Shown: in pieces, positions 20,364 through 56,493 of the stretch
How positions within the stretch are numbered: the stretch's first letter is position 1
How the letters are laid out: each line of letters begins with the position of its first letter
IMG/VR virus record: IMGVR_UViG_3300033182_000674
Coordinates: 1 to 64,000 of that record
Length of the DNA: 64,000 nucleotides
Strand: one strand, 5' to 3'
The notes under the pieces: model-generated
The model's database searches: none
The model's input: the letters and a program-made list of their open reading frames with translations, nothing else
What the model was told of the DNA's origin: nothing
Position numbers and translations under genes: made by a program

Positions 20364-20373
20364 CTCTAAAAAT

Positions 20374-22349: not shown

Positions 22350-22360
22350 AATATATCTCC

Positions 22361-22717: not shown

Positions 22718-22719
22718 GT

Positions 22720-22847: not shown

Positions 22848-22888
22848 TTATTAATTATTTTATTTTTTAATAATGGTATAAATTTTCT

Positions 22889-24222: not shown

Positions 24223-24225
24223 AAA

Positions 24226-24555: not shown

Positions 24556-24745
24556 TACAAGATGATGATGTACAACCAGTACAGTGTGTTGCTAATTCTC
24601 TGTTTATATATCCAATTCTTAACATTGCTACTTCTAATGTACTTGGATATGAGATTATATGGTGTCCGTCGTGTATCTTATAATTATAGTTTACATCATC
24701 ATAAAAGATCGTATATTGACCTTTTCTAATTACTTCTTGATACAC
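24536..24745 (-). CDS. Small protein with Cys-rich tail
   Basis: GGAG RBS; ends HCTGCTSSSCNDC. Confidence 0.5.
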   Translation of the reverse strand: MYQEVIRKGQYTIFYDDVNYNYKIHDGHHIISYPSTLEVAMLRIGYINRELATHCTGCTSSSCNDCERY

Positions 24746-24823
24746 TTGGCATTTCTCCTATCATAACTAGCAATTTTATTTATAAATATTATAACCTATA
24801 AACCAATAAAAGTACACACAATA

Positions 24824-25279: not shown

Positions 25280-25281
25280 AA

Positions 25282-25301
25282 AAGGACTCCGAAGAGTCCT
25301 T
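25282..25301. terminator. Intrinsic terminator between convergent M15A and pstS
   Basis: AAGGACTC-CGAA-GAGTCCTT stem with A-tract on the left (U-tract and UUCG loop on minus strand). Confidence 0.8.
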
Positions 25302-25354
25302 ATGTATAGATGCTAGTTACTTATCCCACTGTACGCCACTAGCAAAGCGAGTTC

Positions 25355-26302: not shown

Positions 26303-26387
26303 TTTTTCTTTTCCTATTAAACATAGTACTACGTGGTACAATACTATCTATTGTTAACATCTAGAAAAATGAAAGTTAATTAACAAT

Positions 26388-26405
26388 CTGTAATATAGCT
26401 GTAAT
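26388..26405. promoter_or_regulatory. Pho-box-like 11-bp-period direct repeat upstream of pstS
   Basis: CTGTAAT-ATAG-CTGTAAT versus the PhoB consensus CTGTCAT-N4-CTGTCAT; lies on the non-coding strand. Confidence 0.45.
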
Positions 26406-26430
26406 AAAAAAGCACCCGAAGGTGCTTTAG
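26406..26430 (-). terminator. Intrinsic terminator after the sulfur-relay operon
   Basis: AAAGCACC-TTCG-GGTGCTTT followed by T-tract on minus strand. Confidence 0.88.
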
Positions 26431-26455
26431 AGTGGTAATATATCAAATACTATTG

Positions 26456-26563
26456 TGGGATATGTTGTAGCAAGATGTGCTACACATTGTAGAGCAAGTT
26501 CATAAGTGGCATATACTCGATCAATAGTAGTGCCTGAACTAGTATGTACTACAACATATCCCA
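26456..26563 (-). ncRNA. Candidate structured RNA in the 3' UTR of the dsrC-like operon
   Basis: Perfect 15-bp closing stem (26456-26470/26549-26563) with nested stems; a 45-codon ORF also overlaps. Confidence 0.4.
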
Positions 26564-26569
26564 TAGCAT

Positions 26570-26911
26570 TTAATAACCGCCTTTACGAGCAACGTATGGC
26601 AATCCTGCAATACGGTTACCCTGCTTTGATGGAGCACCTGGGAACAATTGGTACAAGTCTTTAGAACTTAACTTCTTATTCCAAATCTTACTCATACCTT
26701 TGTTAATAACACGTTCCATTGGTTGCTCATTGTGATCAAAGTACTGCTCACGCAAGTACTCAATCACATCAAAGTGTTCGGTTGTAAGTTCACTCATTGT
26801 GTCATCAGCTGCCGCCATTGCGTGTGCAACTTCTTCTGTCCAATCAGCGATATTAACCAAGTTACCATGCTCGTCAGTTTCGATGGTAACACCATTTACT
26901 TCTAATGCCAT
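26570..26911 (-). CDS. DsrC/TusE-family protein lacking both C-terminal cysteines
   Basis: IETDEHGNLVNIADWTEEVA..LT.EHFDVIEYLRE..LYQLFPGAPSKQGNRIAGLP; ends YVARKGGY with no Cys; AAGGAGG RBS. Confidence 0.85.
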   Translation of the reverse strand: MALEVNGVTIETDEHGNLVNIADWTEEVAHAMAAADDTMSELTTEHFDVIEYLREQYFDHNEQPMERVINKGMSKIWNKKLSSKDLYQLFPGAPSKQGNRIAGLPYVARKGGY

Positions 26912-26921
26912 GATAACCTCC

Positions 26922-27233
26922 TTAGATACAACCAGTCGGCTTTGGTAGTCCTGCAATCTTACAGCCTTGCTTACCAGGACCATATGGGAATAGTTCGTAC
27001 AAGTATTTGTTTGTACCATACTGTTTACCAAACTTCTTACCTACTGCTTTTGTTAATACACGAACTGCTGGAGCAATTTGAAACTCCTCATAGTATTCGC
27101 GTAGGAAGTTAATAATATCCCAGTGACGATCGGTTAATTCGATCTCTTCGTCTTTTGCTAGTTCTTCGGCAATTGCTGGAGTCCAGTCATTAATGTTTGC
27201 CAAGTAACCTTCTTCATCTACATCGTAACTCAT
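26922..27233 (-). CDS. dsrC: DsrC with both conserved cysteines (CX10C)
   Basis: DEEGYL..INDWTP.IA..LA..LYELFPYGPGKQGCKIAGLPKPTGCI. Confidence 0.92.
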   Translation of the reverse strand: MSYDVDEEGYLANINDWTPAIAEELAKDEEIELTDRHWDIINFLREYYEEFQIAPAVRVLTKAVGKKFGKQYGTNKYLYELFPYGPGKQGCKIAGLPKPTGCI

Positions 27234-27249
27234 TGTACATACCTCTTCA

Positions 27250-27333
27250 TTATTTGCCAATCTGTTTCTTCACGAATCGGATTGCTTTCGGAACGGGACA
27301 CTTGTCCCACCATAGTTGGAAGATTGTGTTCAT
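27250..27333 (-). CDS. Unannotated 27-aa peptide MNTIFQLWWDKCPVPKAIRFVKKQIGK
   Basis: Strong AAGGAG RBS; fills the tusA-dsrC spacer; below the ORF-track cutoff. Confidence 0.55.
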   Translation of the reverse strand: MNTIFQLWWDKCPVPKAIRFVKKQIGK

Positions 27334-27343
27334 TTCTTACTCC

Positions 27344-27571
27344 TTAAGTTTTTCTAATAGTAAATTTAAACTGGCCATTTAAATGCCCTGTGCTTTCAAG
27401 TACATCACCAGTTTGATTACAGAACGCTTCAAAATCCTTTACACTACCAGGATCTGTTGCGATAATTTCCAAGATCTGACCGCTTTCCATGCCTTTAAGA
27501 CTTTTCTTTGCGCGTAAGATAGGTAATGGACAATTTAGACCAGTGGCGTCTAATAATACTACATCTGCCAT
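27344..27571 (-). CDS. tusA: TusA sulfurtransferase
   Basis: LDATGLNCPLPILRAKKSL..GQILEIIATDPGSVKDF. Confidence 0.95.
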   Translation of the reverse strand: MADVVLLDATGLNCPLPILRAKKSLKGMESGQILEIIATDPGSVKDFEAFCNQTGDVLESTGHLNGQFKFTIRKT

Positions 27572-27587
27572 ATCTTATACTCCTATG

Positions 27588-27617
27588 GTAAAAAAAGGGG
27601 AGCCCAATTGCTCCCCC
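27588..27617 (-). terminator. Intrinsic terminator after the porin gene
   Basis: GGGGAGC/GCTCCCC stem with T-tract on minus strand. Confidence 0.8.
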
Positions 27618-27653
27618 CATTATTTTATTTATATAGAATTATATTATAAATTC

Positions 27654-28508
27654 TTAAAATACCATGCGCATACCAACAATAGTAGTTGGATCTGTTGCAT
27701 CGTTATCATCAGTGCTATAGTTTACATATGCAGCAGTTGACTTAGAGAAGTTATGTGCCAACTCAGCAATATAAGTTTGATCACCATTCTCTACATCTTC
27801 GATACCACCACGAAGAGTGTTATTGCCAAAATCAGTTGCAGCAACTGCAGTAACAGTTACAGTATCATCATTAGCAATTTCATAAGTAGCACCTACAGAT
27901 AATGCACCAACGTTAGTTGTAGCACCAAATTGCTTAGTTGTTGCTGAAGTAGCTTTGTCTTCAGTATATACACCAGAAACACCTACAGCACCAAAGTCGT
28001 GTGAGATAGCAACTTCATAAGAATCAATCTTATCTTCACCACCATTGTCTTGAACTGTAGCAATAGAAACATCACCAACAGAAATAGCAACTACTGAATC
28101 AGCACGAGTACCACCGTCTGCACCAAATGAAGCGCCTTCAAAGATGTCAACAGTTGAGCTAGTAACTTGCTTAGTTAGATTTGACATACGACCAGCCATA
28201 ACAGTAAAGTCTACCATATCCAATGCAACATATGCATCACGTGTAGCAGAAGAACCTTGGTCAGTATTTTCAGTATCAAGATCTAAAGAAATGTTAGCAG
28301 TAGCTGATGCGCCATTACCCAAATCTTCAGATACAGTAAAACCTACGTATGCATCATCTGCTGATGCGTCAGTGGCGCCATTGCTCATAGTGATTTGCTG
28401 ATCAAGCTGGCCATAAACAACTGCACCTGCTGCTTTTGCATCCTTCTCTGGTGCGCAAGCTGCGATTAATGTTGCTGCTACAGCAACTGCTAATAAAGAC
28501 TTTTTCAT
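27654..28508 (-). CDS. Gram-negative outer-membrane porin (Porin_4-like)
   Basis: Signal peptide; VYGQLD, GFTVSEDLGNG, RDAYVAL..TVMAGR, HNFSKSTAAYVNY; C-terminal Phe (GMRMVF). Confidence 0.88.
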   Translation of the reverse strand: MKKSLLAVAVAATLIAACAPEKDAKAAGAVVYGQLDQQITMSNGATDASADDAYVGFTVSEDLGNGASATANISLDLDTENTDQGSSATRDAYVALDMVDFTVMAGRMSNLTKQVTSSTVDIFEGASFGADGGTRADSVVAISVGDVSIATVQDNGGEDKIDSYEVAISHDFGAVGVSGVYTEDKATSATTKQFGATTNVGALSVGATYEIANDDTVTVTAVAATDFGNNTLRGGIEDVENGDQTYIAELAHNFSKSTAAYVNYSTDDNDATDPTTIVGMRMVF

Positions 28509-28537
28509 ATTAACTCCTTAAGTTTTTAAAAAAGAAA

Positions 28538-28586
28538 CTGTATCATAAAATATACAAATGACACAGCTGTATCATAAAATATACAG
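28538..28586. promoter_or_regulatory. Tandem duplicated dyad-symmetric site upstream of the porin
   Basis: CTGTATCATAAAATATACA at 28538-28556 and 28567-28585; second copy is CTGTAT-N8-ATACAG. Confidence 0.55.
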
Positions 28587-28680
28587 TATTATGTATATCT
28601 TTTTTTCCTAATATATTAGTATAATTACTAATATTCCTATTCAGATTTTTTATAATGGATAAAAATTTTTTATAGGATAT

Positions 28681-28704
28681 AAAAAACCCCTCATGAAGAG
28701 GGGC
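28681..28704 (-). terminator. Intrinsic terminator
   Basis: CCCCTC/GAGGGG stem with T-tract on minus strand. Confidence 0.75.
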
Positions 28705-28732
28705 TGGAATTTATAGCAGAATTGTATAAAGG

Positions 28733-29191
28733 TTATGACTTACCTAGATAGAATGCTCCTGCTGCAAGAATGGATGTTTTTAACCATTCAAAATGTACAA
28801 CTGCATTTTCTAATCTAATAAACTCTGTTTGAGTTTTTGTTGTATCAATTAGACCAAGTAAATTAAAACCTGTAGTACGTTCAACTGGTACGACAACATC
28901 GAGTCCAGTTAAACCTGCTATCATTGCCCAAGCTCCCATACCAAGCATGGATAACACAAAAATTCTACGTGTTAATTTTGCAAATGGGTCATTACCAACT
29001 CGAGCTGCTGCAGCATCAGATGCTTTTGTTGCTCTTTTAGAAGCTTTATCAGCTTCCTCAGATTTAGCTTTCATCATGCCAATCATCATTTCTTGTTGGG
29101 CTTGTTTGGCTTTTTGTGCCTGATCCATGAATTTAAACAGGCCACCCATAGCTGCGCCACCAGCCATTGTTATGAGTTCCATAGGTATCAT
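28733..29191 (-). CDS. Membrane protein, holin-like
   Basis: N-terminal hydrophobic helix, coiled coil, TM after RRIFVL, hydrophobic C-terminus (GAFYLGKS). Confidence 0.45.
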   Translation of the reverse strand: MIPMELITMAGGAAMGGLFKFMDQAQKAKQAQQEMMIGMMKAKSEEADKASKRATKASDAAAARVGNDPFAKLTRRIFVLSMLGMGAWAMIAGLTGLDVVVPVERTTGFNLLGLIDTTKTQTEFIRLENAVVHFEWLKTSILAAGAFYLGKS

Positions 29192-29538
29192 TGTTTTGTT
29201 CTCCTATTTATTATATGGTGCCTAATTTTATTTATAATAAAGAGGATTCCAGATATCAATGGAATAATTACAATAAACCAAGGGAATTCGCGAACGGCTT
29301 CAATTGATTTATTAGGATCAAATTTTATATCAGGCGTTGGAATAGGTAATGGCTCACCATTTTCATCGTGAGTTTTTACACTATCTATTTCTACATTAGG
29401 ATCTTCAATTTCATCTTTTTGAGTATCATCAAAAAATAATGATGATTCACCTTTTAGCGCTTTACCTACTGGCAAAAAGGATAAAGTATTACATCCAACT
29501 AACGTAATACTTAACATCATAATAAAGATCAGTTTCAT
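29188..29538 (-). CDS. Lipoprotein with C-terminal TM helix (u-spanin-like topology)
   Basis: Lipobox LVGC at residues 13-16; Pro-rich linker; TM WFIVIIPLISGILFII; basic tail. Confidence 0.5.
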   Translation of the reverse strand: MKLIFIMMLSITLVGCNTLSFLPVGKALKGESSLFFDDTQKDEIEDPNVEIDSVKTHDENGEPLPIPTPDIKFDPNKSIEAVREFPWFIVIIPLISGILFIINKIRHHIINRRTKQ

Positions 29539-29539
29539 A

Positions 29540-29986
29540 TCATGCTTTTTGAACTACCATAAAAGATTTAAACATCCATCTTAATTTTCTATGATAGTCA
29601 AGTCTTTCTTCCAGAAAGTTCACTAGTCCAAATTGTTGTGCTTCATCAGCCATATTGCGTGTTTCCAAGATTAAAGCTAATAGCTTATCATTATCTTGAT
29701 TAATACGATCAATCATAACTCTTGAAGCTGGAATAGTTGTTTCATCTTCAATGATGCTTAGTTCACTAAATCTACCAAGTGAACCAGGCGCAAATGAATC
29801 TAATGCACGAATTTGTTCTGCATACTTATCTACAGAATTCCAAACGTCTTCATAAATATCACCAAAGAAATCGTGGAATTCATAAAAATCTGAACCTACA
29901 ACATTCCAATGGTAATAGTGCGTTTTTAGATAGAATGCAAAGGTTGTAGCCAATGATTCTTTCATTTTATCAAGTAACTCTTCCAT
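29540..29986 (-). CDS. dps: Dps/ferritin-like DNA-protection protein
   Basis: HYYHWNVVGSDFYEFHDFF..IYE...D.YAEQIRAL; late promoter at 30018-30025. Confidence 0.92.
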   Translation of the reverse strand: MEELLDKMKESLATTFAFYLKTHYYHWNVVGSDFYEFHDFFGDIYEDVWNSVDKYAEQIRALDSFAPGSLGRFSELSIIEDETTIPASRVMIDRINQDNDKLLALILETRNMADEAQQFGLVNFLEERLDYHRKLRWMFKSFMVVQKA

Positions 29987-30025
29987 TTAAATTTCCTTTC
30001 TCGTTGGAATACATTACTATTTATA

Positions 30026-30283
30026 TCACTTTTGCACGGTGTTAATCATTTCTTCGTACAAAATTTCAACTTCATCCATTTCATTACGAACTTCAGATAA
30101 GTTTTGTTTGTGATAAATGTTTGCAATCTTACGGACATATTTCTTTTCAACATCCAATTCTTCTGAGATGTCATTAATAATATCACGTTGAAGATCTTTT
30201 TCAGAGTCAACTCTTGTCATAGAGTTAGACATTTCAACGACTGCATTATATAGTTTCTTGCGATCTTCAGGACTAGATAGCAT
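30026..30283 (-). CDS. dsbA: T4-like dsDNA-binding protein DsbA
   Basis: VEMSNSMTRVDSEKDL..DI......E...KKYVRKIANIYHKQN. Confidence 0.75.
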   Translation of the reverse strand: MLSSPEDRKKLYNAVVEMSNSMTRVDSEKDLQRDIINDISEELDVEKKYVRKIANIYHKQNLSEVRNEMDEVEILYEEMINTVQK

Positions 30284-30462
30284 TTTTTTCTCCTTTTAAA
30301 GATTGAGGCTTTTGCCGATTGTACGATCTAACTCTTCGAGAGTAACCATATCTTGTTGTTTTTCAAGAACAGTTCTCTTTGGATTTAGATTGAATTTCTT
30401 TTCGAACCAAAAGTTAATAGTATCAAACTGATCTATTAACCATCTAAAAATTTTACGTTTCA

Positions 30463-30837
30463 TTAAAATAATTCTTTTTCAGTTAATACTTTAAATTCAT
30501 ATGATTGTTGATTACACCATTCTTGTGCATACTTCCATTTAGCCTTATTGATATCCCATCGCTTTTGATAATAAGGTTTAATTTCAACTATTATTTTTCT
30601 ATTGTCATATGTTTTAATCACAAAGTCTGGATAATAGTTATGCCACTTTTTATCCTTAGGTGAAACATATGGGATATGTAATTCTTCTGAACTCCATTCA
30701 AGTACTTTAGGACTACGATCACAATATAACATAAATCGTCTTTCCCATAGACTTCTATATGTTATACGATTGATATTACCAGAATATTTTTCTTTATTCT
30801 TTGGTTTATATCTTCCACGAATTGCTGTATTCTTCAT
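30463..30837 (-). CDS. 4: Head completion nuclease gp4 (TnsA-N-like)
   Basis: GRYKPKNKEKY.G....ITYRSLWERRFM.YCD....V.EWSSEE..IPY.SP...HNYYPDF..VEIKP; start refined past the tRNA remnant. Confidence 0.9.
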   Translation of the reverse strand: MKNTAIRGRYKPKNKEKYSGNINRITYRSLWERRFMLYCDRSPKVLEWSSEELHIPYVSPKDKKWHNYYPDFVIKTYDNRKIIVEIKPYYQKRWDINKAKWKYAQEWCNQQSYEFKVLTEKELF

Positions 30838-30841
30838 AATT

Positions 30842-30865
30842 TGGTGGGCCCACAAGGACTTGAAC
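30842..30865 (-). pseudogene. 3' remnant of a split tRNA (T-loop, acceptor 3' strand, ACCA)
   Basis: GTTCAAGTCCTTGTGGGCCCACCA; TGGGCCC pairs with GGGCCTA of the remnant at 31606-31640. Confidence 0.85.
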
Positions 30866-30873
30866 TTAAAAAA

Positions 30874-30950
30874 TGGTGCGCCGTGTCCGATTCGAACGGA
30901 CGACCCCTCCGTTATGAGCGGAACGCTACTGACCACTGAGCTAACGGCGC
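30874..30950 (-). tRNA. tRNA with CAT anticodon, probably Ile2 (lysidine type) rather than Met
   Basis: GCGCCGT/ACGGCGC acceptor, TTCCG-CTCATAA-CGGAG, CCA; C4:G69 and C5:G68 match E. coli TilS determinants. Confidence 0.88.
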
Positions 30951-31561
30951 AATAAATCTTCTATAGTCATATCATCTAACTTGTTTATCAATTTGGAGTC
31001 TATAACTATAAGTGTTTCTGTAAAGTGAGACCATTTTGCTTCATCACGATCCGTTTTGTATCCTTTTACTTCAATATATACATCTTCTTGCGGCAAATAG
31101 AAATCTGGGAAATAAGTTCTTTCGCTGCCATTCCATGTATAAGAGAATCCTTTCGGTTCATTATACCACTTTATATTTTGTTCGTCAAACCATTTAGCAA
31201 CAGTTAATTCCCATTGACCTTTAAGTTTGCAACCGCTATACTCAACGATTTTTACTCTACCACACACATTATTCTTTGTATAAGATTCCGGATGTTTTTT
31301 AACTGCCTTCTGCATTGCTAAAGAATGACAGGCTCGCCTTTCATCATCCCAAGATTGGTTCTTACTCGCTTCAGAAATCTTCTTACGGGTTTCTTCAGAC
31401 ATTTCAGCACCGTATGTATATTGGTTACTACCTTTCTTACCCTTCATTCCATACGAAGGTTTTTTAATCTTCCTGTTTGGATTTGAATGACAGTATACTT
31501 CATGTGCTACATTGCTAGTCTTGGTCTTTGCTTCTCTTCTACAATATTGACAAATAAACAT
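30941..31561 (-). CDS. Free-standing homing-type endonuclease (Zn-finger, NUMOD3-like, PD-(D/E)xK)
   Basis: CxxC..HxxxC N-terminus; MSEETRKKISEA; KGQWE..YFPDFYLP..YIEVKG; GGAGG RBS; stop codon lies inside the tRNA 5' end. Confidence 0.85.
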   Translation of the reverse strand: MFICQYCRREAKTKTSNVAHEVYCHSNPNRKIKKPSYGMKGKKGSNQYTYGAEMSEETRKKISEASKNQSWDDERRACHSLAMQKAVKKHPESYTKNNVCGRVKIVEYSGCKLKGQWELTVAKWFDEQNIKWYNEPKGFSYTWNGSERTYFPDFYLPQEDVYIEVKGYKTDRDEAKWSHFTETLIVIDSKLINKLDDMTIEDLLRR

Positions 31562-31578
31562 ATTAACACCTCCATGTT

Positions 31579-31586
31579 TATTTATA
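31579..31586 (-). promoter_or_regulatory. Late promoter carried by the endonuclease cassette
   Basis: TATAAATA between the tRNA 5' remnant and the endonuclease RBS. Confidence 0.75.
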
Positions 31587-31605
31587 TGCTTATTTATCAT
31601 TTCCA

Positions 31606-31640
31606 GAGTCCACTGCTCTAACCAACTGAGCTATAGGCCC
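31606..31640 (-). pseudogene. 5' remnant of tRNA-Ile2-like gene broken at the anticodon
   Basis: GGGCCTA-TA-GCTC-AGTTGGTTA-GAGC-A-GTGGA-CT-C, then unrelated sequence. Confidence 0.88.
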
Positions 31641-31892
31641 TTAATAGATTCCGTAAACTGATTCTTCTGAAATCAATGCTGCTTGTGAATTATCAACACT
31701 GACTGCTAAAGCATCTCCCCATTTAACCGCAACTTTATCTCCAACTTGTACATCCTTTACATCAGGTCCAATCGCTAAAACAATTCCTGGTTTAGAACCT
31801 GTTTCTGCAGATCCTGTTAATACAATACCAGATTCTGTTGTGGTCTCTGATTTACCTTCTGCTAATAAGATATAGTCTTTTAATGGTTTCAT
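31641..31892 (-). CDS. groES: GroES-type co-chaperonin
   Basis: MKPLKDYILL..ETTTESGIVL...GIVLAIGPDV..V.VGDKV...ISEESVYGI. Confidence 0.88.
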   Translation of the reverse strand: MKPLKDYILLAEGKSETTTESGIVLTGSAETGSKPGIVLAIGPDVKDVQVGDKVAVKWGDALAVSVDNSQAALISEESVYGIY

Positions 31893-32566
31893 AATGTTTC
31901 CTTAAATTGTTCCTTAAATTGGCGTCCCGTAGGACAAAACTTTTTACATTGTTCTATAGATTCTATTATAACAATATTTTTATATTGTGTCAATAGTCTA
32001 TCTAACTTTTTCTTTTGAACTTTTACTGCTTGAGGATTTTTTGGATCTAAAAATAAATCGTAATCTTCAAGATAAAAGTCAGGAAAATAATTGTGTGTTA
32101 CACCTTCTTCATCTATCCAAGGTATAGGATCTGGTCTTACCCACTTAATTTTTAATTCATCTAATCTTTTAGCTAATTCTAATTCCCAAGACGAATCTAA
32201 TAGAATTCCTTTATACTCAACTGTTCCCTTTTTCAATCTTCTATGAGGAGATGCTAATGCTTTTTCTCTTAGAAGTTGTTTTGTCTCTTTAGTGTGCTTT
32301 TTACCTAAAAATGTTCCTGGTTTACCTTTCATTGGTGATTCAGGAACTTCTTTACCATCTAACCTAGCAACGGTATATTGATTTGTTCGGCCAGATTGTC
32401 GTCTGGCTTCATTCATCGCCTCAACATTATTTCTTCCCAAAGCATCAGCATATTCTTTTCTTTTAGGATTTTTATCGCACCATCTAGAATGGTTCGCCAT
32501 CCAGCCGCTTGGTTTATCGGAAATATCAAATTCAGTTTTACAATGTTTGCACTTTCTTATATTCAT
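31889..32566 (-). CDS. Second homing-type endonuclease (Zn-finger, NUMOD3-like, PD-(D)xK)
   Basis: CKHC..H..WC; GKKHTKETKQLLREKAL; DSSWELELAK..YFPDFYL..FLDPKN. Confidence 0.85.
   Translation of the reverse strand: MNIRKCKHCKTEFDISDKPSGWMANHSRWCDKNPKRKEYADALGRNNVEAMNEARRQSGRTNQYTVARLDGKEVPESPMKGKPGTFLGKKHTKETKQLLREKALASPHRRLKKGTVEYKGILLDSSWELELAKRLDELKIKWVRPDPIPWIDEEGVTHNYFPDFYLEDYDLFLDPKNPQAVKVQKKKLDRLLTQYKNIVIIESIEQCKKFCPTGRQFKEQFKETL
31920..31935 (-). pseudogene. Probable decayed tRNA 3' remnant (GTCCTACGGGACGCCA) now read through by the endonuclease ORF
   Basis: Ends GCCA (G discriminator, Arg-like); two nt short of a full T-stem plus acceptor strand. Confidence 0.45.
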
Positions 32567-32585
32567 AATAGTAACCTTTAGTAAT

Positions 32586-32660
32586 TGGCGGGCATACCAG
32601 GATTCGAACCTGGAACGAGGGTTTAGAAGACCCTTGTGATATCCCTTTCACCATATGCCC
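32586..32660 (-). tRNA. tRNA-Arg(TCT)
   Basis: GGGCATA/TATGCCC acceptor, AGGGT-CTTCTAA-ACCCT, CCAGG-TTCGAAT-CCTGG, GCCA. Confidence 0.95.
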
Positions 32661-39565: not shown

Positions 39566-40984
39566 TTAGTATTGTTGTCCTGCTGACCTATATCTACCAG
39601 AGGTTATATCACCTACATCTGTTGCATTAGCATCTGATGCGAATGGGAACTTATCTATAACATTAACATAGCCATCAGTTGCATTAAAGCCACCAGATGA
39701 ATAACCATCTGATGTAGATGATTGACCTGTTACACCCCATCTAGAATGAGTCAGATCACCAACATCGGTTGCATTGCCATCGGTTGCAAATGAAAACTTG
39801 TCGATGATCGTCTGAACCGAACCGGCGTCGCCACCAGAAGTATAACCATGCTCAGAAGAAGATTGACCTGCTGCACCATATCTAGTAACGGTTATATCAC
39901 CGACATCTGTTGCATTAGCATCAGTTGCGAATGGGAATTTGTCTATAACATTGCCACCATAATTTAGTCCACCTGAAGTATAACCATGCTCAGAAGAAGA
40001 TTGTCCTGCTGAATAACCTCTAGCAATGGTTAGATCGCCGACATCAGTCGCATTTCCATTTGTTGCAAACGGGAATTTGTCAATTACATTTATATTATAA
40101 GCACCAGAATTGTATCCATACTCAGTTGATGATTGGCCTGATAAATAATATCTACCAACGGTTAGATTACCGACATCTGTTGCATTAGCATCAACTGCGA
40201 ATGGGAATTTGTCTATAACATTTCCAACTGCTGGTACGGGTGAACCACCAGAAGTATATCCATTTTCTGCAGAAGATTGACCTGCTGGATAACTTCGGTT
40301 TGTAGTACTTAAATTAGCAACAAATATTGAGTTCGCATCAGATGCAAATGGGAACTTTTCAATGAGAGTTTCACCACCGGCACCACCACTATTGTATCCA
40401 TAATTAGAACCTTGAGCTTGAGTGCCACCTGCAGCAAATGATATAGTAAATTCAGACAACGCAGTAGCAAGGTTATTACCATCAGATGCTCTGAAAGTAA
40501 CATCAAAAGTACCGCCTTCTGAATCATAACCAGCACTTAATATATCTGCAAGGGACTTAGCAGTAATCGTAAACGTACCATTAGAATCGTTCGTAATAGT
40601 CGCAAGATCATTACCCGAATCTGTTACTAAGTAAGACCATTGAATTGGAAATCCATCTGGATCTGTCGCGGCCAATGTAATAGTAGTTGCAATTCCACCA
40701 ATAGAGTCTAGATCATAAGCAGCTTCTGGTAAACCACCAGAATCCCAAGTAGGAGTAGCATTAATTAAAGCAATACTATACCAACCAGATCCATTCCAGA
40801 TGTATAGTTTATTATTTGATGCTACAAATGCTTGATCACCAATTTGATTGCCGGTTGCTGGTAAATTATCAATAGTAGCATAATCTTCAGTGCCTAAAGG
40901 AACATCTGCTGAAATAGCAGTTTCACCAATTTTACCATCTTGGCCGATGATTTTTGTTAGATAAAAAGATTTAGTAATTGCCAT
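39566..40984 (-). CDS. Array B paralog 4: N-module plus six-repeat propeller
   Basis: Same N-module and IDKFPFA.DANATDVGD repeats as 12529-13965; ends GQQY. Confidence 0.88.
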   Translation of the reverse strand: MAITKSFYLTKIIGQDGKIGETAISADVPLGTEDYATIDNLPATGNQIGDQAFVASNNKLYIWNGSGWYSIALINATPTWDSGGLPEAAYDLDSIGGIATTITLAATDPDGFPIQWSYLVTDSGNDLATITNDSNGTFTITAKSLADILSAGYDSEGGTFDVTFRASDGNNLATALSEFTISFAAGGTQAQGSNYGYNSGGAGGETLIEKFPFASDANSIFVANLSTTNRSYPAGQSSAENGYTSGGSPVPAVGNVIDKFPFAVDANATDVGNLTVGRYYLSGQSSTEYGYNSGAYNINVIDKFPFATNGNATDVGDLTIARGYSAGQSSSEHGYTSGGLNYGGNVIDKFPFATDANATDVGDITVTRYGAAGQSSSEHGYTSGGDAGSVQTIIDKFSFATDGNATDVGDLTHSRWGVTGQSSTSDGYSSGGFNATDGYVNVIDKFPFASDANATDVGDITSGRYRSAGQQY

Positions 40985-40996
40985 TTCTTTTATTCC

Positions 40997-42451
40997 TTAA
41001 ATTTGATAACCACCGGTATGTTCTGGTCCGCCAGTCATTGATAAAACTGATTGTGAAGTAATTTCATTTGCATAAGCAAATTTTATTTTCTGACTGCTGC
41101 TGCCGGTGCTTACATATGCACTTGTTAATTCACATGAAGAAGCGCCATATTGATTACTTTGTGATAAATCTCCAACATTTGAAGTATTCCCTTCATTGGC
41201 AAATGGCATTTTTCTTAATGTTGCGTAGTAAGTACCAAATATTAAATCTCGGCCGCCATATGCATAACCATCAGTTGCACTAGCAGCACCCACAGGACCA
41301 TTACGAGCTCCATCTATGTTACCTATATTACCTAAAGAACCATTACTTGCAAAACTATATTTTTGTATATTACTCAATGCCGCTTGAGATGGGGGAAAAT
41401 ACTGGCCGCCAGCAACATAACCATTCTCTACACCGTTCATTGGTGCTTGATCTACTGATTTTTGTGTTAAACTACCACTGTTTATTGGTGTTTCGGATGC
41501 AAAAGGATATCGTTTAACTGCAGCTTGAACTGGTGGATTCCATGAATATGGGTTATAACCGCCCATTCTATAACCATCTGTTTCGGAAGACATTCCAGCT
41601 CCACCATATAGATTGTAAGCAAAACTACTTTCTATTGAGGTTGTTGGAAAAGTAACAGTTGAGCCACCTGCTGCAAATGGAAATTTTGCAACGTTATTAT
41701 TATTTCCATTTGGTACTCCTGGATAAGTATAACCACTAAATACATATCCAGCTTCTTTTGATGACATACCTACATGATAGCCTCGTACACTTGGCGCTCC
41801 ATTAATTGGGTGATATGCTTCAGTTGTAATAGTTTCAGAAGCATATGGAAATCTTAGTATTTGATTAGCAGTTGTATAATAACCAGTAGTTGATCCTTGA
41901 AATACATATGGAATATATAAACTAATTGTAAATTCAGACAAAGCTGAGGCAATATTAATTCCATCTGTTGCTCTAAAAGTAACATTAAACGTTCCACCTG
42001 TTGAATCATATGATTCAATTTGAGATGTTGGTAATGCTGTAATAGTAAATACACTTGAATCTTGTTGAATAGTTGCCAAATATTGAGCAGAATCAGATGC
42101 TGAATAATCCCACGTAATAGGTAATCCTTCAGGATCAGATGCTGATAATTGTATAATAGTTGAACCAACATTATACGAATCTAATTCGTATTCTGCTGCA
42201 GGTTGACCACCAGAATCCCATGTGGGACTCTGATTGATTAAAGCGATATTATACCAACCGGCTCCAGTCCAAATGTATAAACGATTTGTCGCTTGTACAA
42301 ATGCTTGATCACCTACTTGATTACCAGTTGCAGGTAAGTCATTTGCTGTAGTATAATCTTCAGTACCTAATGGAACATCGGCACTCAACTTTTCAGTATT
42401 AATTGTAGTTGAGGTATTTAATAGTTTTGATAAATTAACTGAATTAGACAT
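40997..42451 (-). CDS. Array B paralog 3: N-module plus divergent propeller
   Basis: N-module intact; repeats diverged (RFPYASE, KFPFAAG, RYPFASE, KYSFASN, KMPFANE). Confidence 0.8.
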   Translation of the reverse strand: MSNSVNLSKLLNTSTTINTEKLSADVPLGTEDYTTANDLPATGNQVGDQAFVQATNRLYIWTGAGWYNIALINQSPTWDSGGQPAAEYELDSYNVGSTIIQLSASDPEGLPITWDYSASDSAQYLATIQQDSSVFTITALPTSQIESYDSTGGTFNVTFRATDGINIASALSEFTISLYIPYVFQGSTTGYYTTANQILRFPYASETITTEAYHPINGAPSVRGYHVGMSSKEAGYVFSGYTYPGVPNGNNNNVAKFPFAAGGSTVTFPTTSIESSFAYNLYGGAGMSSETDGYRMGGYNPYSWNPPVQAAVKRYPFASETPINSGSLTQKSVDQAPMNGVENGYVAGGQYFPPSQAALSNIQKYSFASNGSLGNIGNIDGARNGPVGAASATDGYAYGGRDLIFGTYYATLRKMPFANEGNTSNVGDLSQSNQYGASSCELTSAYVSTGSSSQKIKFAYANEITSQSVLSMTGGPEHTGGYQI

Positions 42452-42461
42452 TTTTTATTTC

Positions 42462-43556
42462 CTATACCGTTATGATACTGCCTTCTGTTATGTTTGACCA
42501 TGTAGGATTACCATTTGTTTGATTTGATCTCAATGTCGCAAAGGTTACCCAATTTGCTGCATCATAAGTACCGTTTAAATTTCCAGTGTAATATTGTAAT
42601 AATGTTTCTTGTGGGCATCTATTAGGTCGTGCACCAATAAATGTTCTCAAATTTAATGAACCACCTTCCATTGCAGTGTATTCAATTGGATCATGTAAAT
42701 ACCATGCGATCCAATGTCCTGTTCCAGATGACCAAGATGTTCTTGCACCATTAAACATATTACCAGGACCAGCATCCCAACCACCATTATACGTTGTTTG
42801 TGTAAATGGATCACTGGCGTTTGAAGTATATATGCCATATTTTCCAGGAACTGGTATTTGCCCATATGTTGCGGACATAGCAGTTCCAGATGTTCCTGAC
42901 GTTGATAATCTAGTACCATCGCCTAAATAAATTCCTCCAGCATTATCAATATCCCAGAGATAATAACTTGGACCAACACTAGCATATAATCTCCACAATT
43001 GGAAAGTATTTGGCGCCCAACCTAATGTAAAGTTTGAACTTGCTGTTGCTGTATTTACTCCATCAGATGCTTTAAATGTAATATCAAATGAACCACCACT
43101 TGAATCATATCCAGCATCTAAAATATTTTGTAATGACTTTGGTGCAATTATAAACGTTCCATTTGAATCATTTGTAACTGTAACAAAATCATCACCTGAA
43201 TCCATTTCGTAAGTCCAATTTAAGACTTGCTCTTCTGGATCAGTTGCGATCAAATTAATTGTTGTTGAAGCAACAGAATCTAATACATACGCTGCTTCAG
43301 GTAATCCTGCAGAATCCCATATTGGAGATTCATTTACTAATGATATATTGTACCAACCTTGTCCATTCCAAAGATATAATCTATTTGTAGAAGCAACATA
43401 GGCTGTATCACCAGTATCATTACCACTTAATGGTAAATCATTTGGCGTTGCATAATCTTCAGTACCTAATGGTACTTCATCGGAAATAGCAGTTTGAACA
43501 ATCTTACCATTATCTCCAATTATTAAACCAAGATTAAAAGACTTTGAAACGGCCAT
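42462..43556 (-). CDS. Array B paralog 2: N-module plus unrelated C-terminal domain (possibly discoidin-like)
   Basis: N-module, then NMFNG..SW..WIAWY..PNRCP..LQY..NWV pattern. Confidence 0.72.
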   Translation of the reverse strand: MAVSKSFNLGLIIGDNGKIVQTAISDEVPLGTEDYATPNDLPLSGNDTGDTAYVASTNRLYLWNGQGWYNISLVNESPIWDSAGLPEAAYVLDSVASTTINLIATDPEEQVLNWTYEMDSGDDFVTVTNDSNGTFIIAPKSLQNILDAGYDSSGGSFDITFKASDGVNTATASSNFTLGWAPNTFQLWRLYASVGPSYYLWDIDNAGGIYLGDGTRLSTSGTSGTAMSATYGQIPVPGKYGIYTSNASDPFTQTTYNGGWDAGPGNMFNGARTSWSSGTGHWIAWYLHDPIEYTAMEGGSLNLRTFIGARPNRCPQETLLQYYTGNLNGTYDAANWVTFATLRSNQTNGNPTWSNITEGSIITV

Positions 43557-43559
43557 ATA

Positions 43560-44714
43560 TTAATCCATTGTTAATGTATCAATATAATCATTAGCATCCA
43601 TCATACGAACAGATGGTGTAGTGCCAGATCTTCTATTACAGCTAGCACCAATGTATGTTACACCACTAACTGTACCATCACCAATTTTAACCCAGTTATT
43701 ACTAGTATGACTAGATTGTCTATACCACCAACGTGATACGCCATTTGCAACTCTTACAGCAAACCACCAATCAGTACAAGTAGAACCTTGATATGCATTA
43801 TATGTAGTGTCAATACCAGTAAAACCAAAGCCATTCGAATCAGTATCATTACTTAATCGACTAACACCTTCAACAACTTGATTACTTGCGTTGTATAAGT
43901 ACATACCACCACCACCTCTATTACTGAAGCTGGTCGCATAACCAGAGAAATAATATACTGCTAAGTATTCATCACCTAATTCCATTGTCCTTGGTTGAAC
44001 ATGCATACCATCAAACATTTTGGTTGTACTTGTAAGAGTCCATGTCCCAGTGTTAGCATCGTATGAATCAGTCCATGTACCACCATCACTATACGCATCT
44101 AATAAAACACGAGTTGAATTAGCCCAAGCATCTCCTTGAGTATCTAAGTTAACTGCAACACCATTGGAAAAGGTAATTGTAAATTCTGATACAGCACCAA
44201 TGATATTAATACCATCAGTCGCTCTAAATGTTACAGCAGCAGTACCACCTGCAGAATCATATCCAGCTGCTAGAATATCTTCAAGTGTTTTCGCAGTAAT
44301 TGTAAACTCATCATTGTTTTGAGAAATTGTAAATAGATCTGCAGCAGAATCAGCTGCTTCATATGTCCATTGTATAGGTAAACCTTCTGGATCAGATGCA
44401 GCCAATTGAATTACAATAGGTGTTCCACTATTTGAATCCAGTTCATATGCAGCTTGAGGTTGGCCATTGGAGTCCCATATTGGACTTTCATTAATTAAAG
44501 CAATATTATACCAGCCAGCTCCAGTCCAGACATAAAGACGATTTGTTTCAGCGACATAAGCTTGATCACCAACTTGATTACCAGTAGATGGTAATTGCGT
44601 GGCTGTACTATAGTCTTCGGTTCCTAGTGGAATATCTTCAGACAAAGCTTGTGTTGATATCTTGTTATCTTGTCCAAGAATTAAGCCTAAATTAAAAGAC
44701 TTAGATACAGCCAT
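43560..44714 (-). CDS. Array B paralog 1: N-module plus unrelated beta-sandwich-like C-terminus
   Basis: N-module, then Trp/Tyr-rich strands (WWFAVRV..VSRWWYR..WVKIG). Confidence 0.72.
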   Translation of the reverse strand: MAVSKSFNLGLILGQDNKISTQALSEDIPLGTEDYSTATQLPSTGNQVGDQAYVAETNRLYVWTGAGWYNIALINESPIWDSNGQPQAAYELDSNSGTPIVIQLAASDPEGLPIQWTYEAADSAADLFTISQNNDEFTITAKTLEDILAAGYDSAGGTAAVTFRATDGINIIGAVSEFTITFSNGVAVNLDTQGDAWANSTRVLLDAYSDGGTWTDSYDANTGTWTLTSTTKMFDGMHVQPRTMELGDEYLAVYYFSGYATSFSNRGGGGMYLYNASNQVVEGVSRLSNDTDSNGFGFTGIDTTYNAYQGSTCTDWWFAVRVANGVSRWWYRQSSHTSNNWVKIGDGTVSGVTYIGASCNRRSGTTPSVRMMDANDYIDTLTMD

Positions 44715-45819: not shown

Positions 45820-47151
45820 TCATTTAAACCTATCAGGCCCATGAATCCATATAACAAGTGTCCATCTTTCACCTTTTGTTACAGGATGTACTTTGTGTAA
45901 ACAGAATGATGGGAAGGTTGTAATTGCACCACGTTCCATAATTGCATCAACAAGATTACCATTATTATTCACTTCAAGTTTACCACCTTCATATGATGAA
46001 GGATCTGATAATTGAATAACAACAGATAATTTACGAGTAGCAGATTGACCAGCTCCAGCATCAATATGCCAGTCATAATGACCACCTTCTTTATAATGTA
46101 ATAGCTGAAGACTATGAGTAATACCTAATAGATCAAACTTATAAAGCTCTTTATTTAGATGCTCTGCCGCAGCAGCAATCTTAGTATAAATCCATTTATA
46201 TTTCTCTTCTAAAGGAATATTATAAACATCTACTGTTCTTGTTTCAGCAGCATATGTACCTTCGTAATCACCAGCTCCAACAGTACCTTTGACTTCATAA
46301 AGATCATCTTTAGATTCAATAATCGATTGGCATTCTTCTGGTGTTAACATTGCTGATGGCATATTATGAGAACCTAGAGTGGCAATTCCTGGGAAAGTAT
46401 CATCACATCGGCGTATCATAATACCGTCTTCAATAATATTTTTATTCATACCAAAATCAAATGGTTCACGTTCTTGCTCTTCAGGTTGAGGTGCACGCTC
46501 TGGAAAATCTTCCATTTGTGGTATTTCACGCGGTGGAATAACAAATGTTGGTCGTTTAATTTCTTGTACATTAGGAGTAGTTTCTCCTTTAATACGAACT
46601 AAATCACCAGCATGACCAGCATTCTGACCTTCTGCATCTACAAAATGAAAGAATACTTGTGTTTGCCATTTTCCTTTATATGTTGTACGCCAATGTGGTA
46701 ATTCTTCACCACGATACATAACCATATCACCAACATCAATTTGAACTTGTTCACCAATTCTATCATCCATATCTTTACCAAAATAAATTGGCCAAATACG
46801 AGATTCTTCTGCGTGTCCAAGAGTTAATGTACCAGAAATTTCGCATGCTGGTCGATCAGTATGCCATTCTAATGTTTCACCTGGTTTATAAATTCTAGAG
46901 TAACAATAAGCAGGCAAAAGCTTTATACCCAATTGATCGGATAATGGTTCTGCAAGATTGTTTAGAATTTGTTTTAAATAGACATCATTATAAATGCTTT
47001 CAGATAAAGGACACTGATCGTCTTGTTCAAGTTTACCTTCTTTAGAAAGTTCAAATAAATGGTTGGTCAAATCAGAACATGCTTGTTTATCAAGAACACC
47101 ACTAAGATATACCCAACCTTTATCTTTAAAGGCATCTGCCACTGGATTCAT
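45820..47151 (-). CDS. Tandem two-domain 2OG-Fe(II) oxygenase
   Basis: Domain 1 WHTDRPACEISGTL..HWR..VFFHF; domain 2 YDWHID..RKLSVVIQLSDP..GGKL..HKV.PVTKGER.TLV.W. Confidence 0.88.
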   Translation of the reverse strand: MNPVADAFKDKGWVYLSGVLDKQACSDLTNHLFELSKEGKLEQDDQCPLSESIYNDVYLKQILNNLAEPLSDQLGIKLLPAYCYSRIYKPGETLEWHTDRPACEISGTLTLGHAEESRIWPIYFGKDMDDRIGEQVQIDVGDMVMYRGEELPHWRTTYKGKWQTQVFFHFVDAEGQNAGHAGDLVRIKGETTPNVQEIKRPTFVIPPREIPQMEDFPERAPQPEEQEREPFDFGMNKNIIEDGIMIRRCDDTFPGIATLGSHNMPSAMLTPEECQSIIESKDDLYEVKGTVGAGDYEGTYAAETRTVDVYNIPLEEKYKWIYTKIAAAAEHLNKELYKFDLLGITHSLQLLHYKEGGHYDWHIDAGAGQSATRKLSVVIQLSDPSSYEGGKLEVNNNGNLVDAIMERGAITTFPSFCLHKVHPVTKGERWTLVIWIHGPDRFK

Positions 47152-52913: not shown

Positions 52914-53210
52914 TTACACACACCCTGTTGGCTTTGGAAGACCACCATACTTAGCAATTTGTTTCATTGGTCCAGACTTCCAAATATCATAAAGTGCTTT
53001 TGCTTTACGATCCATACCAAGTGCTTTACCAAAGTCGCGTACACGAGGTACCATACCATCGTTTTCATACATCTCACGTGCTAAATTAATATGTTCTACC
53101 ATTTCTGGTTTTAAAACTACACCATCGGCGATTGCCATTTCATTCATTACTTCTGGAGTCCAATCATTCATATTGATTAAGAAACCATCACCATCACGTT
53201 CTAAACTCAT
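52914..53210 (-). CDS. tusE: DsrC/TusE-family protein with only the C-terminal cysteine
   Basis: ERDGDGFLINMNDWTPEV..MA..LYDIWKSGPMKQIAKYGGLPKPTGCV. Confidence 0.85.
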   Translation of the reverse strand: MSLERDGDGFLINMNDWTPEVMNEMAIADGVVLKPEMVEHINLAREMYENDGMVPRVRDFGKALGMDRKAKALYDIWKSGPMKQIAKYGGLPKPTGCV

Positions 53211-53874: not shown

Positions 53875-54195
53875 TTATTTAAATAAAGATTTAAACTTAT
53901 CCCAGAGAGATTCCGAAGTTTCAACAACCGTATCGGTTGCTTCGGTAGTAGTTTCAACGATTGTGTCGACTACCTCTTCAGTTTTTTCTACTACAACATC
54001 AGTTGCCTCGGTAGTAGTTTCAACAACTGCATCAACTACAGTTTTTTCTTCTACAACAGGTTGAGCAGGGGATTGCTCAATTGTAGTAGTAACTTCCGTG
54101 TTTTGAGCAACTGATTGCTCAGTAGTAGTTTCTTGATCCTGCGCTAGAGCAGAAGTGGATGCAATAATCATCATTGCAATTAAAGTTTTTTTCAT
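53875..54195 (-). CDS. Secreted acidic T/E/V-rich repeat protein
   Basis: Signal ALA-QDQ; VVETTTEATDVVVE / IVETTTEATDTVVE repeat; amphipathic WDKFKSLFK end; late promoter at 54245-54252. Confidence 0.7.
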   Translation of the reverse strand: MKKTLIAMMIIASTSALAQDQETTTEQSVAQNTEVTTTIEQSPAQPVVEEKTVVDAVVETTTEATDVVVEKTEEVVDTIVETTTEATDTVVETSESLWDKFKSLFK

Positions 54196-54253: not shown

Positions 54254-54553
54254 TCATTGTTCTTTAGGTTGATAATTACGGAAGATACGAATTTCGCTTA
54301 CATAAGGATCACATCCTTCGCCTTCGCCTTCCATTTTACCTCCCATCCACATCTGAAAAGAATCTTCATCATGGAATTGTTGAACAATATGTTGAGTTTC
54401 ATCTGGCAATTCACGAGTAATTTCTACTCGCACTTCCCCCGCAATTGCTTCAGATAATGCACTAAATAATACAATAAGTACCATTAGTAATCCAGCAGCA
54501 AGTGCTGGAATCCAACCTGGACAGTTTTTTTCATTACAGCTTGAGCCTATCAC
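54254..54553 (-). CDS. Single-TM hypothetical protein
   Basis: GGAG RBS; TM WIPALAAGLLMVLIVLF. Confidence 0.55.
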   Translation of the reverse strand: MIGSSCNEKNCPGWIPALAAGLLMVLIVLFSALSEAIAGEVRVEITRELPDETQHIVQQFHDEDSFQMWMGGKMEGEGEGCDPYVSEIRIFRNYQPKEQ

Positions 54554-54585
54554 TATAGATCTCCTAAAACCCCCCCTAAGTTAAA

Positions 54586-54606
54586 GAAACCCCTCCGAAG
54601 AGGGGT
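54586..54606 (-). terminator. Intrinsic terminator after the SGP-like gene
   Basis: CCCCTC-TTCG-GAGGGG-TTTCTT on minus strand. Confidence 0.78.
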
Positions 54607-54613
54607 GGTTTTA

Positions 54614-55060
54614 TTATTGTGCAGGTGCGTAGTAATATGGAGTTGAAACAGATGAGAATCCGTTGTTGTTATCCATGTTACCATTGCCTTTGAAGTCACC
54701 TGCAGCTTTACCGCGACCAGAGAAGTTGAAAGAGAACTTAGCAGAACCTGCTGCATCACCTTCACCACGTCCGTTAGCTGCTGCATCAGCAAGACCATTT
54801 ACACGACCATCGGTTGCATCATTGTCTGAAGCCAAACCATTTGCTGCGCCATTAGTAGTACCGTTACCAGTCAATTGACCAGCAGTTTTACCAGTACCTT
54901 CGAAAACCATACCAAAAGTTGCTTCACCTTCACCAGTTGCATTGCCAACTACGTCAGCGTTGCCGTTGTTAACGAAAGAACCTGAAGAGTTGCTGTCGTC
55001 AAAGAAAGCGAAAGTTTGAGTTGAAGCCAAGATTGCTGCGATTGCGATAATTTTTTTCAT
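54614..55060 (-). CDS. Secreted Gly/Asn-rich protein resembling sulfur globule envelope proteins
   Basis: Signal TFA-FFDD; duplicated GEG..F.(M/F).F.G.GK motif; PYYYAP end; SGP resemblance from memory, not from a search. Confidence 0.5.
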   Translation of the reverse strand: MKKIIAIAAILASTQTFAFFDDSNSSGSFVNNGNADVVGNATGEGEATFGMVFEGTGKTAGQLTGNGTTNGAANGLASDNDATDGRVNGLADAAANGRGEGDAAGSAKFSFNFSGRGKAAGDFKGNGNMDNNNGFSSVSTPYYYAPAQ

Positions 55061-55224
55061 GAGAATATCTCCTAATTTTAAATAAAAAGTTGTGGATGTA
55101 CTTATAACATTTTATTATATTATTAAATGTTAATATACTGTTTAATTTTATATATACGATTTTTACTGTAAAACCGTATATTTTGTATTAAAAGTTTTTT
55201 ATACCATATAAAGAAATTTTATGG

Positions 55225-55959: not shown

Positions 55960-56493
55960 TTACATATATAAACTTACCGGCATAGTCAATCTCATATTGC
56001 CATGAAATTCATCTACAGAATGGTACAGAAAGCTCGGAAAGATTAGAAAATCTCCTGTCTTTGGTTTAATAACCATTGGTTCAAACCATTCTCTGAAAGC
56101 ACTAGAGAGGCCTCTATTTGCGTTTACTCTAGGATCATATAGAGTAATTTCACCACCTTTATCTCTTTCTTCACAGAAGAGATAAAACACTCCAACTACG
56201 GATGATCCTAAATGATTGTGTGTTCTAATCTTGTGGTTCTTTTTAACACCAATCCTTAGATTCATATGAGCTGGTGTCTTTACACCACTTAATTCAAGGA
56301 AATCTGTAAATGCTGGAATAATTACATTACGCTTAAATTTTTGAATCTCTGAAATATCACTCATATCGTCATGAATTTCTTTATCGATTTTTTGTGTTAA
56401 AACAAAGTTAGTCACTTCATCTAAAAGCGCTCTTTTTTCACCGTACAATGTATCATATAAAATAGGTGTATTCCACCCTTGAATCAATTTCAT
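55960..56493 (-). CDS. 2OG-Fe(II) oxygenase (TIGR02466-like)
   Basis: HNHLGSSVVGVFYL..GGEITLYDPR..PKTGDFLIFPSFLYHSV..R. Confidence 0.82.
   Translation of the reverse strand: MKLIQGWNTPILYDTLYGEKRALLDEVTNFVLTQKIDKEIHDDMSDISEIQKFKRNVIIPAFTDFLELSGVKTPAHMNLRIGVKKNHKIRTHNHLGSSVVGVFYLFCEERDKGGEITLYDPRVNANRGLSSAFREWFEPMVIKPKTGDFLIFPSFLYHSVDEFHGNMRLTMPVSLYM

Follow-up and report, generated by a model that had tools for sequence, protein, structure and literature searches.

A T4-like phage gene for a two-unit protein of the sulfur globule family, with a proposed role in the globule coat of the host

The sulfur globules of Allochromatium vinosum are coated by periplasmic, Sec-exported proteins, among which SgpA and SgpB are interchangeable, and the expansion of the globules is influenced by SgpC (PMC10386293). 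The SUP05 isolate EF1 has four sgp genes and draws on its periplasmic globules as an energy store once reduced sulfur is exhausted (PMC6509183). Phages are known to carry auxiliary metabolic genes for sulfur metabolism (dsrA, dsrC/tusE, soxC, soxD, together with soxYZ; Kieft et al., 2021, PMC8190135); sgp is absent from the genes listed in that survey. This report describes an sgp gene on the minus strand of a 64,000-nucleotide stretch of viral DNA, hereafter the window, which comprises positions 1 to 64,000 of the IMG/VR record IMGVR_UViG_3300033182_000674. On sequence grounds, its product belongs to the sulfur globule protein (SGP) family and consists of two tandem units. The gene is probably an auxiliary gene of host origin in a T4-like phage whose host would be a sulfur-storing gammaproteobacterium, and its product would join and maintain the globule coat. 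No earlier report of a phage-encoded sgp was found in the literature searched, many subscription journals being outside its reach.

The gene and its candidate control signals comprise:
54614..55060, minus strand: SGP-family open reading frame (sgp), ATG start, 148 aa, confirmed in the sequence
55007..55060, minus strand: Sec-type signal peptide, codons 1-18, predicted cleavage after T-F-A
54827..55006, minus strand: SGP unit 1, residues 19-78, FFDD start and GEGEATF-G-M-V-F core
54656..54826, minus strand: SGP unit 2, residues 79-135, core GEGD..SAKFSFNFSGRGK..GDFKGNG
54614..54655, minus strand: C-terminal tail, residues 136-148, PYYYAP and the stop codon
55068..55073, minus strand: putative ribosome-binding site AGGAGA, 7 nt 5' of the ATG
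55114..55172, minus strand: promoter-like region, two overlapping sigma-70-type candidates, consensus matches only
55172..55145, minus strand: promoter candidate 1, TTTACA-16-TAAAAT, from a scan
55145..55117, minus strand: promoter candidate 2, TTAAAC-17-TAATAT, by direct reading
54589..54606, minus strand: predicted intrinsic terminator, 7-bp GC-rich stem, UUCG loop, T-rich tail

The protein matches the Pfam family SGP (PF17228, sulphur globule protein) at 43.1 bits (E 8e-11), above the curated cut-off of 26.7 bits, in two stretches: residues 29-76 align with profile positions 10-57, and the segment encoded by 54623-54796 aligns with positions 14-71. No match to PF17228 occurs in 14 control genomes, and neither NCBIfam nor PHROGs holds a match to the phage protein. 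Because the sequence is rich in Gly, Asn, and Ala, a composition test was run with a second profile, built from 25 non-redundant mature cellular relatives. Against this profile the mature phage protein obtains 100 bits, its first unit 60 bits and its second 51 bits, whereas 500 shuffles of each reach at most 8 bits (at most 15 for a shorter core piece). The real scores lie so far above the shuffled ones that the match is one of homology, for both units, to cellular proteins that carry the NCBI name 'sulfur globule family protein'. An earlier interpretation made from the letters alone (the sequence-only reading) had noted a resemblance to the SGPs of gammaproteobacterial sulfur oxidizers and proposed a profile search against Pfam, and the resemblance is borne out by that search.

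The cellular relatives are proteins of 88-114 aa, almost all of them single-unit, which share with the phage protein the F(F/W)D start, a GEGEATF-S-M-x-F core, the GDFKGNG segment and the PYY tail, at 45-62% identity over the common parts. In the putative signal peptide, inspection of the sequence recognizes an n-region with KK, a hydrophobic core (residues 4-12) and T-F-A followed by FFDD, a pattern consistent with cleavage after A18. This peptide is near-identical to those of cellular SGPs, and 24 homologues show no change at A18 or F19; the protein appears to be exported by way of a cleavable Sec signal. The mature chain (130 aa, 12.9 kDa, isoelectric point 4.2, grand average of hydropathy -0.57) contains 19% Gly, 15% Ala, and 13% Asn. 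Its Gly content matches that of its relatives, whereas Tyr amounts to 2.3% versus 5-8%, the PYYY motif alone being kept. The mature cellular relatives examined here measure about 7.5-10 kDa, and the larger phage chain, with its two complete units, is filed accordingly as a variant rather than as a typical member of the family.

The core motif GEG...F.x.F.G.GK is present twice (residues 43-58 and 99-118), and a core of 33 residues aligns gap-free across the units. In unit 1 the N-terminal half of the core is cell-like, the basic, DFK-containing half has diverged or been lost and no Tyr tail follows; unit 2 has the opposite pattern, with a diverged N-terminal half and a cell-like C-terminal half. 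On direct reading, the stretch upstream of the unit 2 core retains a likeness to the N-terminal part of a mature cellular SGP, so that the repeated element is the whole SGP domain without its tail. The tail, in which P141, Y142, and Y143 are invariant among homologues, is far shorter than its counterpart in cellular SGPs, which is YGY/AP-rich, and contains much less Tyr. A secreted, Gly/Asn/Ala-rich protein with an FFDD start, a duplicated core motif and a PYYYAP tail had all been noticed in the sequence-only reading, and the signal peptide with the FFDD start, the composition, the two motif copies and the tail agree with it. What goes beyond it is the tandem arrangement of two SGP units, each complete, nearly all cellular relatives having one.

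Compared with SgpA/SgpB of A. vinosum (CV1/CV2, PF17228), for which the family model and the description were used, the phage protein likewise passes the family cut-off, has an N-terminal Sec signal and is small, Gly-rich and repetitive, and its gene is likewise carried alongside components of the rDsr pathway. It differs from them in being two-unit, acidic, hydrophilic, and poor in Tyr, with a mature mass of 12.9 kDa, and in being encoded by a lytic-type T4-like phage. The single-unit gammaproteobacterial SGPs share the signal peptide and the motifs listed above, but they have one unit, long YGY-/AP-rich tails and 2-12 paralogues per genome, in several cases in tandem, in genomes that also have DsrC, whereas in the phage protein two diverged units stand in tandem and are followed by a short tail. 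Two further proteins of A. vinosum, SgpC and SgpD, are also of the secreted, globule-associated type; the effect of SgpC on expansion is the kind of effect that a modified phage SGP might have, and SgpD, set beside the phage protein by description, is larger, with a suggested coiled-coil structure. As regards the phage sulfur genes of the PMC8190135 survey, sgp resembles them in its host origin, in belonging to a phage of sulfur oxidizers, in its position near dsrC/tusE and tusA and in a presumed contribution to energy from sulfur oxidation. Unlike them, it would encode neither an enzyme nor a sulfur carrier but a structural protein of a storage organelle, located in the periplasm.

The record from which the window is taken is the complete genome of a marine T4-like phage (219,676 bp, rated 100% complete, 34% GC) that includes a T4-type major capsid gene (Gp23, E 6e-151), and both flanks of sgp are common to other T4-like contigs. 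A word-index search retrieved 62 relatives of the protein, about 20 of them two-unit (141-176 aa, 45-78% identity, all metagenomic), and every two-unit relative with retrievable context lies on a phage-like contig. Among these contigs, L003/L004 carry three DsrC-family genes, a porin, NifU, and IscA, L005 carries PhoH, gp59, gp32, and Cpn10, and L053/L054 are syntenic with the window. In IMG/VR, 8 loci carry a relative, two of which are single-unit; contigs L018 and L019 are phage contigs with a single-unit, cell-like sgp. By tblastn, many other genes are common to the homologue contigs and this phage, except in the case of L017 and L020. On the viral contig L017, the two-unit SGP gene (5989-6414, plus strand) adjoins a gene for a large protein, and none of the other genes is shared with this phage; L020, a 147-kb viral contig distantly related to this phage, encodes a Tyr-Gly-rich two-unit SGP (5995-6453, plus strand). 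Neither the phage SGP (tblastn) nor 24 kb of the window (megablast) has a match in 50,697 GenBank phage records.

A dsrC-family gene or tusA occurs within a few kb of sgp in most of the phage loci, in gene orders that vary (sgp-dsrC; sgp-tusA-dsrC; sgp-99-aa membrane protein-dsrC; dsrC upstream of sgp). These loci belong to related phages and are not independent samples; the linkage survives rearrangement, which argues for a functional tie. Phage sgp is under purifying selection, with pairwise ratios of nonsynonymous to synonymous substitution (dN/dS) of 0.19-0.56 among seven phage genes, and the four best-supported variants within sgp, found in four metagenomes, are all third-position synonymous. 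The sequencing runs with near-identical DNA come from aquaculture, marine and estuary metagenomes.

Some observations on these runs concern the structure of the gene in natural populations. Read depth over the 5' part of sgp is far above that of the flanks, which suggests that these samples are rich in similar sgp genes. In each of the four runs there are contigs in which unit 1 is joined to unit 2 across 54718-54915, with a net loss of 60 codons, equivalent to a single-unit sgp, and one metagenome contig appears to join 54539 to 55102 without sgp, suggesting presence or absence of the cassette, with only 35 nt on one side. The short sides of these joints (20-35 nt) make them weak evidence.

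The gene looks like a self-contained cassette with an early-type promoter, as it has its own sigma-70-like candidates, ribosome-binding site and terminator and lacks a T4 late box. Both promoter candidates lie in an AT-rich spacer of 164 bp 5' of sgp. The position of candidate 2 is conserved in related phage loci, where it aligns with TTGACA-17-TAATAT of one related phage, and the GGAGA of the putative ribosome-binding site (55068-55072) is invariant across 7 aligned phage loci. The T4 late-promoter box TATAAATA does not occur in 55061-55224, directly upstream of sgp, and a T4 late promoter for the gene was rejected on this basis. The ribosome-binding site and UUCG terminator claimed in the sequence-only reading were found again, the former 7 nt before the ATG and the latter as a hairpin at 54606..54589. 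The GC content of sgp is 44.5% versus 34% for the whole phage genome, a difference for which Gly and Ala codons account in large part.

As regards the origin of the doubled form, a tree of units resting on 33 columns places all unit-1 copies in one clade (100/98) and all unit-2 copies in another (100/99). Since each unit is monophyletic, one two-unit ancestor predates the diversification of these phage genes, and by sequence the main two-unit clade descends from a single ancestral two-unit gene. The single-unit phage genes L018 and L019 group with unit 1 (94/84), and the nearest cellular units in the tree come from metagenome-assembled genomes (MAGs) at 46-50% GC (84/81). With only 33 columns, deeper placement is unsafe and internal duplication is not separable from fusion of neighboring paralogues. 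Two further two-unit genes, L020 and P0053, represent independent duplications, and P0033 (91 aa) is a unit-1/unit-2 recombinant.

The possibility that the two-unit architecture is exclusive to phages was considered and rejected. Among 301 genomes from the order of one candidate host, 22 have matches, nearly all to residues 1 to about 80, that is, to a single unit, and two of those genomes encode a divergent two-unit paralogue (31-32% identity, 186-192 aa). The doubled form is accordingly typical of phage genes and not exclusive to them. One such cellular gene, a secreted two-unit SGP-like paralogue, is the open reading frame at 250-828 (minus strand) of locus L050 (G003:C2:914700-915900); the cellular two-unit paralogue has a Cys in each core and a long Tyr/Pro/Gln-rich tail.

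An AlphaFold2 model made with 24 sequences predicts two long beta-hairpins, one per unit (residues 37-76 and 86-125), with a predicted local distance difference test (pLDDT) value of 65-85 in the core. In the hairpin stretches odd positions are occupied by Gly, Ala, Phe, and Met and even positions by Asn, Thr, Glu, Asp, Lys, Arg, and Ser, and the two-residue hydrophobic moment of residues 86-114 is significant (z = 4.2, 1 in 2000 shuffles). This arrangement suggests a two-faced sheet that may be able to sit at the sulfur-water interface. A Foldseek comparison with the PDB returned generic long amphipathic hairpins, namely stems of pore-forming toxins and phage tail knobs, with template modeling (TM) scores of at most 0.37, and kinship with these is not claimed.

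As to the host, the cellular matches listed include strain Milos-ODIII6, the scaly-foot snail symbiont CTD079 and MAGs labeled Sedimenticolaceae or Sedimenticola, and the nearest cellular units among them belong to gammaproteobacterial MAGs of 46-50% GC labeled Sedimenticolaceae or Gammaproteobacteria. ODIII6 is a close free-living relative of Ca. Thiobius, with globules reported attached to the cell, and sulphur vesicles have been imaged in Ca. Thiobius (PMC10952691). A host within the Thioglobaceae, as the sequence-only reading implied, is not established by the matches listed, although SUP05/Thioglobaceae may still be the host group. The DsrC of the phage shows 71-76% identity to its counterpart in each of five candidate host genomes and for this reason does not discriminate among them.

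Taken with the findings on the coat of A. vinosum and on the reserve of EF1, the supply of coat protein during infection is the most likely role of the phage gene. In the proposed mechanism, sgp would be transcribed as a self-contained unit from a sigma-70-like, early-type promoter, and its product would be exported to the periplasm, cleaved after A18 and incorporated into the coat of the host's periplasmic sulfur globules. Contact would be made through the long amphipathic beta-hairpins, the Gly/Ala/Phe face turned to sulfur and the polar, charged face to water. The phage copy would maintain the supply of coat protein once infection shuts down host gene expression, so that sulfur from the oxidation of sulfide or thiosulfate could still be deposited and the store would remain open to use. 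The cytoplasmic half of the process, from sulfur to sulfite through rDsr, would be served by TusA and DsrC of the phage, and the net effect would be to keep electron flow and ATP available for phage replication. To our knowledge, the route of sulfur from the periplasmic store to the cytoplasm is not settled.

Several findings weigh against this interpretation. Each of the two Pfam stretches alone is borderline with respect to PF17228 (26.2 and 25.1 bits in a scan of the DNA), so that the assignment leans on the closer cellular subfamily, which is itself annotated by homology and for which no direct globule localization was found. The protein is not hydrophobic overall (hydropathy -0.57, isoelectric point 4.2), whereas SgpA-C of A. 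vinosum are described as 'extremely hydrophobic' (PMC10386293), and both its Tyr content (2.3%) and its tail are reduced relative to cellular relatives. The AlphaFold2 model has low overall confidence (pLDDT 61, predicted TM score 0.25), and the periodicity is significant in one of the four strands tested, the others having z values of 1.0-1.9. No RNA run is present among the sequencing runs matching the region.

The main rival to coat supply, which the present data do not separate from it, is coat modification: the protein would remodel or break the coat by cross-linking, capping, or loosening it, giving more and smaller globules or exposed surface and a faster mobilization of stored sulfur into the rDsr pathway, which phage TusA/DsrC would boost. 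The systematic differences of the phage form (two units, a unit 1 without its basic and DFK half, a shortened Tyr/AP-rich tail) point in this direction, as do the independent origin of two-unit forms at least twice more (L020 and P0053) and the fact that the remaining sulfur genes of this phage belong to the consumption side. However, nothing distinguishes remodeling from simple supply, some phage contigs (L018, L019) carry an sgp of the single-unit, cell-like type, and a divergent two-unit paralogue exists in cellular genomes; this explanation is regarded as rather unlikely. A related proposal, entertained tentatively, is that the tandem SGP evolved in phages as a coat modifier that changes globule surface or size and, together with the conserved 99-aa Cys-bearing membrane protein and the TusE-like gene that come after it in several phages, would form a module linking the periplasmic store to the cytoplasmic relay.

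An envelope function unrelated to sulfur, such as superinfection exclusion, receptor masking or modification of the cell envelope, would agree with the early-type promoter and with the location of sgp among several small genes for envelope-targeted proteins (one secreted, of 106 aa, and two with a transmembrane segment, of 92 and 99 aa), and the predicted hairpins have a likeness, one of shape alone, to stem hairpins of beta-pore-forming proteins (TM score below 0.37). These fold matches are generic and derive from a low-confidence model, though, and the homology to SGPs is specific and extends over both units, the signal peptide and the tail; with the dsrC/tusA linkage recurring in differing gene orders, such a function is improbable. 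That sgp is a recently captured host gene carried without benefit to the phage, as its self-contained cassette, its GC content of 44.5% against 34% (much of it explained by Gly/Ala codons) and the one contig apparently without it (54539 joined to 55102, weak, 35 nt on one side) might suggest, is very improbable given 45-82% identity across diverged phages at dN/dS of 0.19-0.56, a two-unit gene old relative to these phage genes and an invariant signal peptide, ribosome-binding site and tail.

The surroundings of sgp in the phage genome include the following features, which confirm the DsrC and TusA genes claimed earlier for this phage as three DsrC-family genes and one TusA gene:
26597..27553, minus strand: cytoplasmic sulfur-relay cluster (TusA, DsrC, DsrC-like)
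26597-26902, minus strand: DsrC-like, without Cys
26925-27233, minus strand: DsrC, with both conserved Cys
27350-27553, minus strand: TusA, with CPLP motif
52914..53210, minus strand: DsrC/TusE-family gene (DsrC-family span 52917-53207), only the C-terminal Cys present, at 1.4 kb downstream of sgp
54254..54553, minus strand: 99-aa single-pass membrane protein with Cys-containing ends, next gene downstream of sgp
19661-20619, 30874-30950, 32586-32660, minus strand: tRNA genes (six)

The order sgp, 99-aa membrane protein, dsrC-family gene is found here and in several related phages, and the membrane protein is a possible partner of the SGP. It has more than 100 unannotated metagenomic relatives and no Pfam match, and one relative is located near a phage integrase on a MAG contig. 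The second gene downstream of sgp (53875-54195, minus strand) encodes a secreted acidic protein of 106 aa with Thr/Glu/Val-rich repeats that has only faint matches, to the phasin PhaH and to the lipoprotein Ag473; like the SGP, it could be associated with the globules or with the envelope. The sulfur-relay genes belong to a larger host-like cluster at 25355-29986 (minus strand) with a PstS-type phosphate-binding protein, the DsrC-like protein without Cys, DsrC, TusA, a Gram-negative porin and ferritin. A phage-borne porin beside sulfur-relay genes is unusual, and its homologues are all metagenomic proteins.

Elsewhere in the window, nine paralogues of 358-487 aa with 38-63% mutual identity, several of which match phrog_19111, are arranged in two arrays (7158-13965 and 39566-44714, minus strand). 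A 443-aa protein (45820-47151, minus strand) combines a ferrochelatase-like N-terminal part, recognized by PHROG matches, with a C-terminal 2-oxoglutarate (2OG)-Fe(II) oxygenase domain, and a further 2OG-Fe(II) oxygenase is encoded at 55960-56493. The six tRNA genes lie in 19661-32660 and correspond to Pro-TGG, Gly-TCC, Thr-TGT, Leu-TAA, Met-CAT, and Arg-TCT.

If the proposed role is true, viral metabolic reprogramming would extend to a storage organelle and to the periplasmic half of the sulfur pathway, and pipelines that seek metabolic enzymes only would miss phage sgp. The phage SGPs also represent a natural experiment on SGP function: the parts they retain (signal peptide, Phe-alternating cores and PYY tail) and those they have dropped (the Tyr/AP-rich tail and half of the basic residues) indicate which features are likely to be essential. 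For models of sulfur cycling in coastal and low-oxygen waters, the finding suggests that infection may change the amount of elemental sulfur held by cells.
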